A stretch of DNA of 64,000 nt from Dimorphilus gyrociliatus (GCA_904063045.1 CAJFCJ010000003.1:1116001-1180000), one strand, 5' to 3'. Numbered from the stretch's first letter, positions 19,071 to 27,943 are shown. The notes: generated by a model from the sequence alone, not told the origin. A program made the numbers and translations.

Positions 19071-22000
19071 TCAGTACTTCGTCCAATCTGGCATCAAAGC
19101 GTCGTTGAGAGCCTGTTGGGATGGTCTAGCCGTTCCTTCGCATCTCATATGTCTGACTTCTGGCCACCTTCGATAAAAGTTATTCAACCACTTCGAGCTC
19201 ATAGCATTAACTGTTTTCTTGCATTTTCCCAAAAATATTGCTAGACTTGAGCCCAGCTGTCTCAATTGCAAACCCTGCAGTTTAATATTAGTCTGAGCAC
19301 AAGCATAAGCGTGTTTCACCAATTTTCTCTCTTCCTCAGCAGAAAAAAGGGAATTATTCGAACGAGGTTTATTTGGAGAATTAGCATTAACTCGATCTCG
19401 TAGAGTTGAAGTGGGAACGTCGTAAAGTTTAGCTGCCTTCGTTACTGAAAAGCGTTTTCTCGTGACAGCTTTGTAGGCTTTGAGCATAGCGTCTTGTGAA
19501 TATTGATGATACTGTTTCTTATGTTCGTACTAAAAAATATACAGGATTAATAATTTTGTCACGTTGAAATCTTTAAAATATCCCTCACATTTCCATAAAG
19601 GCCTTTACGGCCCTTTTTACTTCTTCCTGGTGCTTGACCCGTGCCATCATCATCACTGTCACTTAAATCATCGGAATTAGACAAAGACTGTTGGTCGTAG
19701 TCGGTTGTGATATACGATCCAAGATACCCCGCACCCTCTCGATTTCTATATTATAAATACAATAAATTAAAGCACTTTTTCATTCACATTTTTGTTCTGA
19801 GATGTTACCTGTAGTCGTGATCAGCATCATTCATACCATAAGTTGCCATTTTTCCATTTCTAATACCAATTCTCATTTTACTTGGGGAATTCATTTTACT
19901 TTTTTGTCTCTTCGCTAAAAGCAAACGAAAATATTTTATCATTCGTTAATCTATCATTTTTGCTCCACTTACATTTTGGTAATATAAATTGGCCGCCATC
20001 AAAGGGGGCTTGTGTTTTTGGTGGCACAATCGATGGTACAAGTTCGGTGGGTGGAGCAGGAATAACGTTTGCATCTAAAGGATAAATTCCTGAATCTCTG
20101 AATGCAGCAGTTAAGTTTGCCGGTGTCCACGCTCTTTCATAAGCTCTACAGCATAGTCGACTCATATCATACTTTCTTACGGTATGCGTTCGTGCTCGAA
20201 CTATGGCGGCCCAGGCTTCATCGTAGAACACTTGCCTAGACAGTTATATATTTATTAAGTGTTTATTATATATTAGGGTATTACCTGTATAAATGTTCAG
20301 CACCCGCTATGTCGCTTGATCTTGCAACAATCATATCGGATGATCCATTATTAGTAACGACACTTACACCAGGTTCTGGTTGGAATTTGACGGCTGATAA
20401 ATGAGGAGGTAAAGGAAATAGTAGCATGTTATGTTGTCTTGCTTTATCGAGAACAGAAAGTGTTACATGACTCATATGTGCATCATATAGCACAAGCACA
20501 CATTCGTCAGGTGAATTTGGTAGATAAGTTTGCAAGTGCGTCCTGACGTACTCGCTGAATACATTGAAAGACGTTCTACCCCTTGGGGTAACGTTGCCGG
20601 AAGTGCCTTGAAGAGAACCTTCGGAGGAAATATTGTCTTTAAATATGTTTGAGATATAAGTGCTAGACAACAAACCTTCTAACAAAATACTTGGCATTTT
20701 CCTGCCAGGAAAGACGATATAAGGCGGAACGGACGACCCAACAGCATTTCCCGAAGATAAGACAGTAACACATTTATTTTTAGGCCGAAGTCGAGGTGGT
20801 TGGTTTTTTTCAGGCCAAAGGCCCTGCATTTTAGAATGAACACAGCTTTCTAGCACAAAGAATATATGGTCCGGTTTATCCATCAAATTATGCTCGTGCA
20901 AAAGGGCCTCAAATTCTGAATAGTATTTGTCAATAACCTCGCGATTATTTGACCTCTCTGCCAATTCGCTTAATTTTTTTACTTTTTGGTTACGAACCTC
21001 CGGCCAGCGACTGTAAAATCCTAAAAGCCATTTATTGCTTAATTGACCGTCATCTGTATTACGTCGGCCTATTTGAACTGCTAAATCTGTTGCTAATTCA
21101 CGTATTTTTTCTCTCGAATAGCCATATCCCAACTCATCTAAATATAAGAGATATTCAACAATTCTTCTCTCGTCACGTGTTGTTAAGATGGGAGGTTTTC
21201 TGTTTCTTCTTCGACCAGCGCTTAAAGAAACCTAATTCAAATTTCAACTTAGATCTTTTTATCATTTAAATAAGTATAAAACTGACCCTTCCCGTCACTC
21301 TATCTCTAAGTGTTGTTTGGGGAATACCATATTTCTCACTGGCCTCTCTAATTGTCATTTTATCCTTTTTAACAGCATTGTAGGCTTGTATAACATTGTG
21401 AAAGTCATACTGTCCATATTTCCCCCCAGAGGCAGTTCGTCTATGTCCAGGTGATGTGTTGAGATTTACTCGTAATGATTTTCCTCGACCCCTCGGGGGC
21501 GATGGAGATTCAGTTTCTTCAACATCTATGGCAATGTCTTCATCACTTACTTCAGATGATGACAGTTCGATTTTGCTTTTTCGAATGCGAGAACTCTGTT
21601 AATAAAAGCAATTGTTAATAAGGATTACTTTCTCAAAGTATTTTTTCAGATAAAGTGTTTGATGGCTTAACATGTCTCAAGCATGAAGGCGGCTAAATAA
21701 TGTTAAAGCCGTTGCGTAAGAATAGAAGTATAGTAAAGCAAAAGCTTCATTGTTATTTAGCCTGAACAGGAAAAAACAGGATTGCTAATTCAAGAAAATA
21801 GAAAACATATGAGAGCTGGAATAGATCGTTGACCCATCAAACACAAATTGTCAGATACTTGCTTTTCTTCTCTTCATTTCTTTTTACTTATCTTAACATA
21901 ATCTAGTCGTTCATCTGAAAAAATTGTAATGGAACATCAGGATTTTGAAATAAAAAAGTAAGGCAAATATAATACGATTAAGTTATGAACGAATCGCAGC

Positions 22001-22660: not shown

Positions 22661-23010
22661 TGTCTTATCTTTTGTGTCTATTATATCGATTTTCAAGCTT
22701 CAACGCGTGATTGTTTTTGTTGGTTGGAAGAATGTTAATTTGCATAATTAAAACATCAAAATTGATTTATTTCTAATGCATATTCTTGAAAATCACTTGC
22801 CAAATTAGGAGACGGTCTTACTTACTTATGATCGACGGTAGATCGCCTTAACTTGAAGTACGATGAACGATAATACAGGTAATTAAATACACAATGAAAG
22901 TGTCAAAATGCTAATTGCTGAAATTTTTATCGTTGCTAACTCGCTAATTTTTATCAGATCATTCTACACATGAAAATGATTCGTGCGAAAACGGTTTAGA
23001 TAACTACAGG

Positions 23011-26000
23011 ATGGAAAATTCGGCCACACCTAATTCCAGTTTTAAGGAGGATGATCAATCGATCCTCTGCCAAATTTGCCGTGTATCCATAAAAACAAAC
23101 TACAGCAAAAAACATTTTAAAAGTATTGGTCATACAGTCACAAGTGAGATGCAACGTTTACTTCAAGAGAAGAACGTTCCTGTATCTGATAAATTTCAAT
23201 GTGTTTACCATTTGGAAAGAGATGGGTATCCAACAGCCGACTACCTCCTTCGTCATGTTAAGTCTTATCACAGAGATATGTTTGATCAAATTCGTAATGC
23301 TGCTGGTATACATGACGAAGAAGTTGCTGAGGCTAATCATTCACTTACGGAAGAATGCACTTCATTAGGTAAGCTTTAGGGATACCCTGGTCCAATGTGC
23401 AAATTTTCGAACTCAACTTTGACCTTTCTCCTGGTATGAACTGAGAAAGCTTCAATTTTGATTTCAGCTTCATTTTGGAACTTTCCTTCAAAATTGAAAG
23501 TTTTTATTGAAATTTTCTGGCCAAAAACGTTCTTGATTAATTAATGTTCTTTTAAAAGAACACTTCAAAAAAGAAATTTTTTCCTCTTCGCACTACGTCA
23601 TTTTCCAAATTTTAAATTTTTTTAAAATTTCATATGTAACACAAACAGAATGAATAGTAGCTATCTCCTTAACTTTCTACAACAACAATTTTTATGATCT
23701 GAAAGTGGCAGATTTGTAGACAGGATAGATATGGCTTTGAAAACATTCTTTCAATAATTGTTTACTGAAAATATTGTATGTAATGACTTTTATGAACGCA
23801 AATCGGTATTATAAGTGGCTGTATGTAAGCCATTGTTTATTCAGGGATTTTACAGCTTTTTTCTTTCGTTTTAGAATGTAACCAATCGATCATTTACATT
23901 ACAAGATTTGGGATTTCTGAATAATCAATTGTTAGATATTATAAGCCTGTCCTTAGCAAAAACAATTGATTTCTCCTTCCCTAGTTGCATATATACTTAT
24001 TGAACTCGTCAATTTCTAAATTTTGCTTCTATTCCATAGTTAAAATAATGCTATTTTTTATATAGGTATGGAGGAAGTGGAGAAATATATCCGTGAAGAG
24101 ATAGTATCGGAAGCTGATGAAAAACCTTCAATTGACAATGGTTCTAGTGAAGTTTCTCGACCCATTCCCAAAAGAACGTTTTATTCTTGCAAAAAATGCG
24201 ATAAAAGGTGCTTCAAATATGCTGACGCTTCCAAACACGTTGCCAAAGAACACGATATACCGCGCAGTATGGCTTACAAACATATCTTTTGTCCCAAAGG
24301 CTCTGGTTTGAACTCAAAACAGGTTTGTTGACATTTGTATTGAACATAGTTTAGTTTAATGTATAAATATAAACTCTCATTATCATAACATTTTATTTCT
24401 ATTCATCATGGGACACAACAGCAGATATCATTATCTCAAACTATTTGAAACTAAATAGCTGAAAGAATAATTAATTTAAAATAAATCCGTGTCCCATTCA
24501 GAAAAAACATGGATATTTTAAATTAATATATTTTGAAATGACAAAATTAAAGTGATAATTTAAACTACTATTGTAGACCTCCAAATCACAAAACAAGTGT
24601 TTACTTCATCAAGAAAGCAACTGAGTGCTTTCCCTATGCCTTTAACCTAATTTTTGTTGTATCTAACACACCTGATAACTTTAAACAATGAATGAAAGTG
24701 ATTATGTGGAATGACTGCTATTGCCTATAGCTATTAAACTTTGAGCAAAAGTAATCTCCACTAATCATGATATAATCAATTCAACCATATAAACTCATTG
24801 CTATAAACTTTATAGCTGTTAGAGTTTACAACATGTCAGAATTTTGAATTTAAAGTCTTAACAAAAGAACACATTCGTTATTTAAAGTTGCTAACCCTTT
24901 AAATATCATAACCATTTGCTGCCCTTGCTTCTTTTAACTTCCTAAATGTTCAGGTAAAGGCCAGAGAAAATTTGTTACGAGTTTACAAGTCTCGGGAGCC
25001 GAAAAATGTTAAGTACGTTGAAAAGTGCCTAAGTCTTGAACATCAACGTTATAAGGAATTTCCGAAAAATGCTGATGATGGAAAGACGAAGCTATTCTGT
25101 TCCTTCTGCGATTTGAAATGTGACGTTCCAAGCATGTCTTTACATATCTATTCTCAAAAACACTCTCTGTGCTTCTTCACGGAAGACTACAGAAAAAAGA
25201 ATAGTATTACCGATAAATTTGAACATTATGCCGAATCAGCCGTCCAAACAAGAAATTTCGACGTATCAATTACTGATTCAGATCCTCCTCCCATTGAGGA
25301 AAATTCCCCTATTATAGAGGAGAAAAGCCCAGAGGAGACAAAAAAAGAAATTCTTAAGAAAAAGTTTCGAGGAAAATACATTACTAAGAACTCTATACCA
25401 GGAAGTTGGCAATACAATGTCAGGTATGAAAATCGAGACAATATACAACATTCTGTTGAATGTAAAAAGTTTAATTTTATTTTTCTATTCAGACTTCTGA
25501 AGATGCACGCAAAGAGACCTTACAGTCAAACCTACGTGGATACTGAGAGATTGACTCTGGATTATTACGAGTCATTTGAACCAAAGAACTATGAATATGT
25601 TGTGAAGATGCTCGACTTGGAAAAACAAAAAATTTATGAAAAGCAACAAGCCCTTGGAACAAATAAGTCTCAGCCGATAAGTGCTATACATCAACGATGT
25701 AAATATTGTTCTAAATCTATGGCATTTTACGAATATAAAAGACACGTATTTGGGATGCTTCATAGTCGACAATTTTTTACGGAGGAGTTCAGAAAAGACT
25801 ATGCCGTTGCCGAAAGTTTTACACCGTATACACCGGAGGAAATACAGCAGGAAAATGCTAAGCGATTCCCTGTTGATGGGGTCAAATTCGTTTACAGAAG
25901 TCTTTCGAATGATGTACCTACAAATGATAATAATATGGATGATAGTCCTACTGAGAGACCGAGTAGAAAGAGAAAGAATGCTTGGCTAGAGCAAAGCGGA

Positions 26001-27464
26001 GAATGGGAGCTAGGTATACTTATATATTTTTCATTCAAATGTTCGTCATTAGCTCTCGGTTCATTTACTCTCTATATCTTTGATGGTTCGAAAGAAGTTT
26101 CTTCTCTTTTTATTTTACCAAAAAAAGGATTATCTTAGTTCTCCTTGCCTTTGGAATTCCATTTAACCGTCAGTAATATTTCTTTCATCTATTCAGACGG
26201 GAAAAATCATTAGAGATTTTCGTAATACGTTCTCTTCCTTTTAAAGTCAGCTCTATTAAAGAGAAGAATTTCTATTCTAAATGAAAGATATGTCATATTT
26301 TCTCTTTTCTCCAGGTCAAGAAGACAACTCAAGGGTATTTTCTAGGGCAGGAAGAGGGCAAAATTCTAGGAATCCAGAAGAAGGCCAGAGTTCGAACAAA
26401 TTTGACGAAATTAATATTTCCCCTAAAAGACGATTTATTGAACCTCAAGCTAAAAATGAGTTAACAGAGTCCAAAATTCAGCTAATAAAGCGCATAAATT
26501 CCGCCCAATGCAAACTGGCAAAGTTGTCAGAAAAAATTTTAACTGACGAGGAAAGGACTTTGAAAAAGAATGATATTGAAAGTCTTCTTGCTGTTTTTGA
26601 ATCAAACATTGATGGAGTTTTGATTACCAAAAAGCTTGATAGGTCTCCAGGTGCAAGGCTAAGAAATTTAAGCAGTGATGACCCCAATGAGTTAAGAAAA
26701 GAAGAATTTTTTGGATCGCTAAGATTAAATATGAATAAAAGTGCTTTCAACATGAACAATAATAATGGTAGTGAAGAACCGAGAAAGAACTCCCAAGCAA
26801 AAAACACAGCCAGGAAATCAACATCCTCATATGTACCTCAGATAGCTAATCAAGAACAAAAGATGTCAGATGACGAAGAAGAGGAAGAAGACAACGATGA
26901 TGATGATGCACCTACTGTCTCAGTTGAGACGAAACGAAAAGATTTAAAAGGGAGAAGAGGACCCAGTGAAGAGCATCGTTTCATATCACCTCCACCACCC
27001 TTATTGAACATGGACTACCATCGAGGAGGACCAAGTGGTAGTTACTTCAGAGACTATAGGGATCCTTACTACGACTATTTTTATCGAGGAAATGGGAGAC
27101 GGTCAGAAGAGTATTACCCTCCTCCACCACCTCCTGGATATTACATGCCTTACTATAGGTATTATATAGTAAAGGGATTTTTTCAGATAAAATTCTTATT
27201 AAATTTCTATCAATAAAAATACTTTTTTTGAAATATAGGGGCTACGAACCAAGAAGACACTCGGATTTTTATCCCAATCGTGACCAACGAAAGGATGAGT
27301 ACGTTTTACCTTCCTATTTAAAATTAATTTTATATTTTGTTAATTCTGAATAATTTATCAGAAATAAAAGATCATCTTTACATAACTACAAAGACGTTGA
27401 AGTGATTGATGGAGAAGGCAAAAGATCTTCTTCAGTTGTTAAAATTGAAGTTGACTCTGATTAA
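23011..27464 (+). CDS. Multi C2H2/U1-type zinc-finger nuclear protein with acidic and Pro/Tyr/Arg-rich C-terminus, ~870 aa
   Basis: Exons 23011-23368, 24066-24322, 24954-25423, 25493-26013, 26315-27158, 27239-27298, 27362-27464 (2613 nt, frame-consistent). Fingers CQIC-x11-H-x5-H, C-x2-H-x14-H-x4-H (atypical), CKKC-x12-H-x4-H, CSFC-x11-H-x5-H, CKYC-x11-H-x5-H; NLS-like PSRKRK. No orthologue recognised. Confidence 0.8.
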
Positions 27465-27943
27465 GAAAATTTTCCAAAAGGTATATTTTCTATCGTAGAT
27501 TAAACTCTGAAAAACTGAGTTAATTTTTCTGATCTTGAATCAATTAAGAACAGAAGAGATAAGAAATTGGTTACATTGGTATATTTTTTTAAAATGCTTA
27601 CTGGAAGAAAGTTAGAAATGATTATCCACAAAATATTTACTAGATGTAAGGAAAGTTTACAATTTTTTTTCTGCTGGATGCATTTATGTTCATTTTAAAT
27701 AGAATTTAATTTCCGTTTTCGTCTACTCTCTTGTTAAATTTATGTTTTTTCGTATAATTTTCGTATCACACGTTTATTGGCTATTTTGAAGATAATTGAG
27801 TGAGAAATATAGCATCGTAGAAAAAGTACTAACCTGATAGAGAAAGCATGATTCTTTCTTATTAACAATTTTTTTATTGATTAATTCGTTTTATAATGCT
27901 TTTTTGTATAAATTCTAAAAATCAAGCTGTTAAGGGGCGTTTA

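Follow-up and report, generated by a model that had tools for sequence, protein, structure and literature searches.

The octamer KNTARKST, encoded by a zinc-finger gene of the annelid Dimorphilus gyrociliatus, closely resembles the stretch of histone H3 around lysine 9, which raises the question of whether the protein carrying it is methylated and read as H3 is. The gene lies in a window of 64,000 nucleotides (CAJFCJ010000003.1:1116001-1180000 of assembly GCA_904063045.1), the whole stretch of DNA analysed here, and positions given without another sequence name refer to this window. A first-pass annotation of the locus had proposed that the lysine is methylated in the manner of H3K9 and that the protein serves as adaptor or decoy for heterochromatin readers. 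The general premises of that proposal are upheld by the literature: G9a and GLP methylate A-R-K-[S/T] sites in non-histone proteins (ATF7IP, LIG1, WIZ and G9a itself), with HP1, MPP8 and UHRF1 as readers, and the serine next to H3K9 acts as an Aurora B phospho-switch, phosphorylation of H3S10 releasing HP1 (as cited through references 38-39 in PMC8541646).

The motif is encoded by a transcribed and spliced gene

Contigs from RNA libraries over positions 22900-27800 define GT..AG junctions and thereby a transcribed, spliced gene on the plus strand; its model, starting at the ATG at 23011, has 870 codons, a minimum length for the gene. The RNA contigs of run X6 were identical to the window, and those of two metatranscriptomes were 95-99% alike. 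The ends of RNA contigs place the end of a 5′ exon at 22864-22878, with an in-frame ATG at 22864 (23 additional codons) and a donor at 22878/22879; the otherwise unplaced 5′ letters of the RNA contigs that start at 22955 map to 22846-22875. The following exon (22955-23368) contains the ATG at 23011, a first finger of the CxxC-x11-H-x5-H pattern (23068-23133) and a CxxH-x14-H-x4-H finger (23200-23271), and the exon at 24066-24322 contains a classical C2H2 finger (24188-24253). According to the junctions and a module alignment, the first copy of a duplicated module occupies the exon at 24954-25423, with a PKN..YV helix, a CxxC-x11-H-x5-H finger (25098-25163) and the sequence FFTEDYR, and the second copy lies in the exon at 25493-26013, with a finger at 25698-25763 and a basic RKRK cluster at 25965-25976. 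Exon 5 (26315-27158), which is large and constitutive, encodes helices predicted by AlphaFold2, a disordered linker with the motif, an acidic tract and a Tyr/Pro/Arg-rich tail. Exon 6 (27239-27298) and the last coding exon (27362-27480, stop codon at 27462-27464) complete the coding sequence. RNA splicing also revealed a 68-nt intron in the 3′ untranslated region (27481-27548), located 16 nt past the stop codon; nonsense-mediated decay is not expected from this intron because it lies too near the stop. The spliced protein model was used for coordinates, composition and dN/dS, and single exons were used for database and fold searches.

Three further observations concern the locus. The 69-nt intron at 25424-25492 is in frame and stop-free, so that its retention would add 23 residues between the finger modules; its splicing was seen in two runs. 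At 26799-26804, just before the motif, a metatranscriptome contig of run X2 (depth 4.6) carries a run of seven A where the window has six; the altered frame would meet a stop near 26843, and either misassembly or a truncating allele may be the cause. Open frames at 19071-21132 on the minus strand, upstream of the zinc-finger gene, belong to a pogo/Tigger-type transposase-derived gene.

KNTARKST reproduces H3 residues T6-T11 in a predicted disordered linker

The octamer is encoded at 26800-26823 by the codons AAA AAC ACA GCC AGG AAA TCA ACA, the codon equivalent to H3 K9 being AAA at 26815-26817 and that equivalent to S10 being TCA at 26818-26820. The reading frame is the real coding frame, as the first-pass annotation had assumed, since RNA contigs splice GT..AG junctions around the exon at 26315-27158; translation of the minus strand across the same 24 nucleotides meets a stop. 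Four H3 genes of the same genome (L001, L002 and L009 among them) begin with MARTKQTARKSTGG, and the match of the motif to residues K4-T11 of the worm's own H3 is therefore 7/8, in agreement with the figure originally given, with N in place of Q5 as the sole mismatch. The hexamer TARKST is an exact copy of T6-T11 of this genome's H3.

In the 870-codon model, KNTARKST corresponds to residues 698-705 and ARKS to residues 701-704, the lysine equivalent to H3 K9 being K703; within exon 5, the motif spans residues 162-169. Single-sequence prediction of exon 5 with AlphaFold2 gave three helices followed by coil over the motif, residues 150-179 of the exon, motif included, being coil with pLDDT below 50. 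An acidic tract had been described just beyond the motif, and we located it at 26866-26907 (residues 720-733), where it begins 14 residues downstream and consists of a Ser followed by 12 Asp/Glu and one Asn; its opening Ser would stand in a CK2-type context. An Asn-rich stretch precedes the motif, and the sequence ANQEQKMS lies on its other side together with the acidic tract.

Other short motifs were observed downstream. The pentamer PTVSV (26911-26925, residues 735-739) is of the PxVx[LMVI] type and is a possible HP1 chromoshadow-binding motif; it is retained in the sister lineage described below, and by our estimate chance alone would give about 0.65 pentamers of this type in 870 residues. 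Near the C-terminus, VEVID (27396-27410; VELID in the sister lineage) and VVKIEVDSD (27435-27461; LVKIEVDSD in the sister lineage) look like SUMO-interaction motifs, and the second of them resembles the C-terminal motif of DAXX. In addition to RKRK, the protein contains the basic clusters KRR and KRK.

The protein belongs to a small zinc-finger family of restricted distribution

The designation as a zinc-finger protein derives from residue spacing. The protein has the ligand spacing of five widely separated fingers, four of them CxxC-x11/12-H-x4/5-H and one CxxH-x14-H-x4-H, but neither its large exons, all of which were scanned, nor the paralogue matched a Pfam model above cut-off, zf-C2H2, zf-met and AKAP95 included, and no homeodomain was found. 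Two of the fingers lie within the duplicated module of about 90 residues (PKN..YV helix, finger, FFTE[ED][FY]R), and the finger ligands are invariant in both module copies, in the sister lineage and in the paralogue. The AlphaFold2 model of the module combines a helical hairpin and a beta-beta-alpha finger (pLDDT in the 80s); in the exon 4 model, two short strands (66-68 and 75-77) and then a helix (78-86) cover the ligands, also with pLDDT in the 80s. A Foldseek comparison of the whole finger module with the PDB yielded no significant match. In sequence searches of the PDB, exon 5 had no match and the module had only weak matches to single fingers, and the ESM Atlas gave no usable match for exon 5. 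By language-model features, the module was nearest to zf-met/AKAP95/ZNF326-type fingers (0.84-0.92), a result to be taken as a lead only.

An exhaustive HMMER search with exons 3-4 against 1.84 billion representative proteins retrieved only P0001, a fragment from the sister lineage, and a spurious bacterial repeat protein. Word-index searches, for which exon 5, exons 3-4 and a 5-sequence module profile served as queries, found nothing beyond P0001, weak blanks in view of length limits and of a collection that lacks the sister's exon-5 frame; JGI metagenome contigs scanned with exon 5 and with the finger module contained no relatives. The genome holds a single paralogue, on the same contig (G000:C3:1754064-1754327, minus strand; L023 1366-2733, L024 7933-9333), which is 32% identical over one module and shares the finger order CxxC..H-x5-H, CxxH..H-x4-H, C2H2, PKN..YV module. 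The paralogue cannot test the motif, because its C-terminal part differs and is devoid of any ARK[ST]. Judged by these searches, the gene and its paralogue are a small family without a Pfam model, and the protein belongs to no known family, one paralogue and one sister lineage being the relatives detected.

WIZ and ZNF644 are partners and substrates of G9a/GLP with widely spaced zinc fingers. The worm protein resembles them in having widely spaced fingers together with a G9a-type lysine site, and differs in the lack of detectable homology and in its H-x5-H fingers of the matrin/AKAP95 kind. Orthology to WIZ, ZNF644 or ADNP, with a motif inherited from that family, would account for the shared layout of five widely spaced fingers, ARKS motif and PxVxL-like pentamer, but the likeness is one of layout only; the outcome of the HMMER search with the finger exons, the missing Pfam domain (specifically a homeodomain), the fold search without a match and, as a lead, the language-model features all stand against it. 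We consider such an origin highly improbable, and it was rejected for want of detectable homology.

TARKST outside histone-fold genes shows a mild excess over expectation

The chance model applied the composition of this protein to 5-7 million residues. Over that range, 0.09-0.13 matches of at least 7/8 to KQTARKST, 0.18-0.25 exact copies of TARKST (about 0.2 per proteome) and 180-250 copies of ARK[ST] are expected. At the level of DNA, a degenerate TARKST pattern occurred at 17 sites in the 78-Mb genome vs 16 for the reversed control. Eleven of the 17 sites were examined in frame and comprise four H3 genes, one H3-fold variant, one DAXX-like gene and five frames broken by stops, one of which reads TARKTT. 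The remaining six are the zinc-finger gene itself and five sites that do not encode the hexamer. Coding TARKST outside histone-fold genes was thus found twice, in the zinc-finger gene and in the DAXX-like gene, vs about 0.2 expected, which by sequence amounts to a mild excess in two proteins of chromatin type. The excess may still be due to chance, since the screen spanned the genome and could have picked up many other motifs. Though rare, the motif is within what chance could yield when a whole genome is read for many famous motifs.

Regarding the other two genes, the last exon of the DAXX-like gene encodes LRSTARKSTAVRK (G000:C4:829271-829287, plus strand; L025 3134-3535), and an upstream exon matched the Pfam Daxx N-terminal domain with an E-value of 5.7e-5, below the cut-off. 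Its protein ends in ..VLIVISDSD, which we take to resemble the SUMO-interaction motif of DAXX. The H3-fold variant starts with MRIKQTARKSTLGS (G000:C22:154277-154293, minus strand; L026 1755-2363; Pfam Histone, E-value 4.6e-31). This variant, probably the cenH3 that has been reported in D. gyrociliatus, has a long divergent N-terminal tail and an intron within the fold, yet with its MRIKQTARKST start it keeps the H3 K4-T11 stretch.

Comparison with a sister lineage indicates strong purifying selection on the whole gene

The 174-aa fragment P0001, 93% identical to the protein under study, led to genomic contigs of a sister lineage: L018 (SRR23372228, 13.1 kb), L019 and L020. The orthologous gene has the same exon structure, with exons about 76-89% identical in DNA. 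The sister is a separate species-level lineage, because the exons are about 80% identical and synonymous sites are saturated. The two proteins are 87% identical, with dN of 0.064, saturated dS (estimate above 1) and dN/dS of about 0.03. These data indicate that the whole gene is real and under strong purifying selection, low-complexity parts included. The sister-lineage contigs should also be useful for comparative work on this genome.

The sequence of the sister lineage at this site is KSTARKST. All nine residues of TARKSTSSY are shared, with synonymous differences in the Ala, Arg and two Ser codons, and the second position of the motif is variable (N here, S in the sister lineage, vs Q in H3). 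Across regions of the protein, 36-55% of all 6-mers are identical in both lineages, and the 30-residue windows around the motif, with 83% identity, are among the less conserved of the protein. Since the whole protein is constrained and 36-55% of its 6-mers are equally kept, the presence of KSTARKST in the sister lineage carries no weight for the motif itself. Furthermore, the comparison of motif and divergent flanks is powerless here, because one orthologue was found and the flanks are as conserved as the motif.

Putative writers and readers are encoded in the same genome

Four Pre-SET loci were identified in the genome, two of which encode an EHMT Cys-rich region, ankyrin repeats, Pre-SET, SET and post-SET. 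The worm thus has two EHMT genes of the G9a/GLP type (G000:C6:3614651 and G000:C15:793020), along with one HP1 gene with chromo and chromoshadow domains (G000:C19:3695998). In agreement with this, D. gyrociliatus has been described as having no SUV39H1/2, two EHMT genes and SETDB1, and as having negligible 5mC with divergent UHRF1 and DNMT1 (PMC12153100). An HP1-type reader is therefore more plausible than a route through UHRF1. According to a review, the minimal H3 recognition site of G9a lies within the same stretch (TARKSTG), the Arg at -1 being essential (PMC8541646). The motif has the A-R-K-[S/T] core with Arg at -1, as in this recognition stretch of H3. No automethylation-type ARK[ST] motif was seen around the two EHMT genes in open frames of at least 60 aa, a scan from which short 5′ exons could escape.

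The Pre-SET/SET/post-SET region of a worm EHMT (272 aa) was docked with a 40-residue stretch around the motif. The pair scored 0.77 and the best of three controls 0.00. Of 78 solved complexes, 51 attained this mark, vs 2 of 108 mismatched pairs; among eukaryotes, 39 of 65 solved pairs that have no older like complex did so, vs 2 of 126 unrelated pairs. Peptides and disordered chains fall outside this calibration. The runs agreed in at least 59% of contacts, with a partner pLDDT of at least 46. In the model, the confident interface of the partner is formed by exon-5 residues 162-169, exactly KNTARKST, placed in the SET groove, and the lysine equivalent to K9 makes the closest contacts. The result may reflect a memory of solved complexes of G9a/GLP with H3 peptides, and it indicates likeness, not binding.

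Comparison with known ARK[S/T] sites

A close analogy is offered by ATF7IP, in which K16 (FKARKTM) is trimethylated by G9a/GLP and read by the chromodomain of MPP8, LIG1 and WIZ being substrates as well (PMC6172828). Both cases concern an H3K9-like A-R-K-[S/T] within a disordered segment of a nuclear protein that acts as heterochromatin adaptor, a role proposed for the worm protein, and the proposed logic of writer, mark and chromodomain is the same. The ATF7IP site, however, lies at the N-terminus, has been demonstrated by mass spectrometry and is retained from fish through mammals, in a protein with no homology to that of the worm, whereas the worm site is internal, a candidate, and known from two lineages only.

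G9a K165 (ARKmeT) and H1 K26 (ARKmeS) bind HP1, as cited in PMC3022755 (for the G9a/GLP site, also PMC8541646). The G9a/GLP site (ARKT) shares with the reading proposed for the worm the use of a non-histone ARK[ST] as ligand of the HP1 chromodomain, but it lies within the enzyme itself, a location for which the open frames around the worm's two EHMT genes gave no counterpart. In LIG1, K126me2/3 is read by the tandem Tudor domain of UHRF1 (PMC7585203). The LIG1 site has in common with H3 and the worm motif the T-A-R-K core, and likewise lies in a disordered region (PMC7585203, PMC6172828); it differs in its reader, UHRF1, and in its DNA-methylation pathway, a route unlikely in D. gyrociliatus (PMC12153100).

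ADNP provides a cautionary precedent. It has nine zinc fingers, an ARKS motif and PGVLL, and the contact of PGVLL with the chromoshadow domain accounts for most of its recruitment by HP1; methylation was not detected, and a K767me3 peptide did not bind HP1 through the chromodomain (PMC3022755). The worm protein is likewise a multi-zinc-finger protein combining ARKS (701-704) with a PxVxL-type pentamer (PTVSV, 735-739). In ADNP, however, both motifs lie inside a folded homeodomain, whereas the worm protein has no homeodomain and carries its motif in predicted coil.

Discussion

KNTARKST may be regarded as a short linear motif in the predicted disordered linker of an expressed, strongly constrained and lineage-restricted zinc-finger protein of nuclear type. 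In the mechanism that we favour, the two EHMT methyltransferases of the worm would methylate, or at a minimum bind, the lysine encoded at 26815-26817; the methylated lysine could then serve as docking site for a chromodomain reader, HP1 for example, and the adjacent serine could be a phospho-switch. This is the most likely specific mechanism because H3 T6-T11 is reproduced exactly. A candidate H3K9 mimic is plausible and biochemically reasonable, judging from the primary structure and the docking model, and each of its preconditions within reach of sequence tools was found. Methylation of the motif peptide in vitro seems likely. The claim that EHMT engages this lysine in vivo deserves credence only slightly short of even, and a reader-dependent function appears unlikely. 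Nuclear location, methylation, reading and the adaptor or decoy role are all properties that we infer for the protein. The resemblance may be no more than a rare coincidence.

The octamer could instead have arisen by drift in a linker containing Lys, Ser, Thr and Arg and have been kept by the constraint on the whole protein, its lysine being unmethylated in vivo or methylated without consequence. Such an origin is a serious possibility, if somewhat short of even. The expected count of 0.1-0.25 per proteome is not negligible, the DNA pattern is as frequent as its reversed control (17 vs 16), and the search was in effect genome-wide and took in many motifs. The motif is conserved to the same degree as its flanks, with N or S at the position of H3 Q5, and in ADNP the ARKS motif was neither found methylated nor bound as the me3 form by HP1 (PMC3022755). 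The loose four-residue G9a pattern, moreover, matches more than 17,000 human proteins (PMC10611923), which counts against inference from the motif alone. On the other hand, two coding TARKST were found outside histone-fold genes vs about 0.2 expected, both in proteins of chromatin type; all six residues of H3 6-11 are exact, within the minimal G9a site and in a segment predicted to be accessible; and the docking model picks out exactly this octamer.

The same residues could also work as a basic Ser/Thr patch, K-x-T-A-R-K-S-T-S-S-Y, offering an R-K-S site to a basophilic kinase, part of a nuclear localization signal or another binding surface, with no role for lysine methylation. The R-K-S-T-S-S run, the full retention of TARKSTSSY in the sister lineage, the Ser-acidic CK2-type tract 14 residues on and the additional basic clusters of the protein are in line with this function. 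It finds no specific support as a kinase or importin site at the patch, however, and stronger NLS-like clusters occur elsewhere in the protein; we regard it as improbable. A kinase patch would in any case be compatible with the phospho-switch, and does not exclude it.

A broader possibility follows the combination of motifs in the disordered tail, which may unite three docking motifs: an exact copy of H3 T6-T11 as EHMT substrate and chromodomain ligand, a PxVxV pentamer as chromoshadow ligand and a DAXX-like C-terminal SUMO-interaction motif. The protein might have newly evolved as an adaptor through which EHMT, HP1 and the SUMO machinery reach its DNA or RNA targets, a scenario to which we attach little probability. 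If it were true, H3K9 mimicry would, given the second TARKST in the DAXX-like protein, be a device used repeatedly in this genome, in an annelid that lacks SUV39 and cytosine methylation and has duplicated EHMT.

Returning to the EHMT-substrate mechanism, endogenous H3K9 mimics are already known; the present one, if real, would occur in a protein family without known relatives. If the mechanism is false, the locus illustrates once more that histone mimicry cannot be predicted from an ARKS-type motif by itself. Should the lysine be both methylated and read, KNTARKST would represent an H3K9 mimic that evolved independently in a protein that is young and lineage-restricted, and a natural case of short motifs plugging new proteins into an old chromatin pathway, in a host whose H3K9 machinery consists of EHMT and SETDB1.
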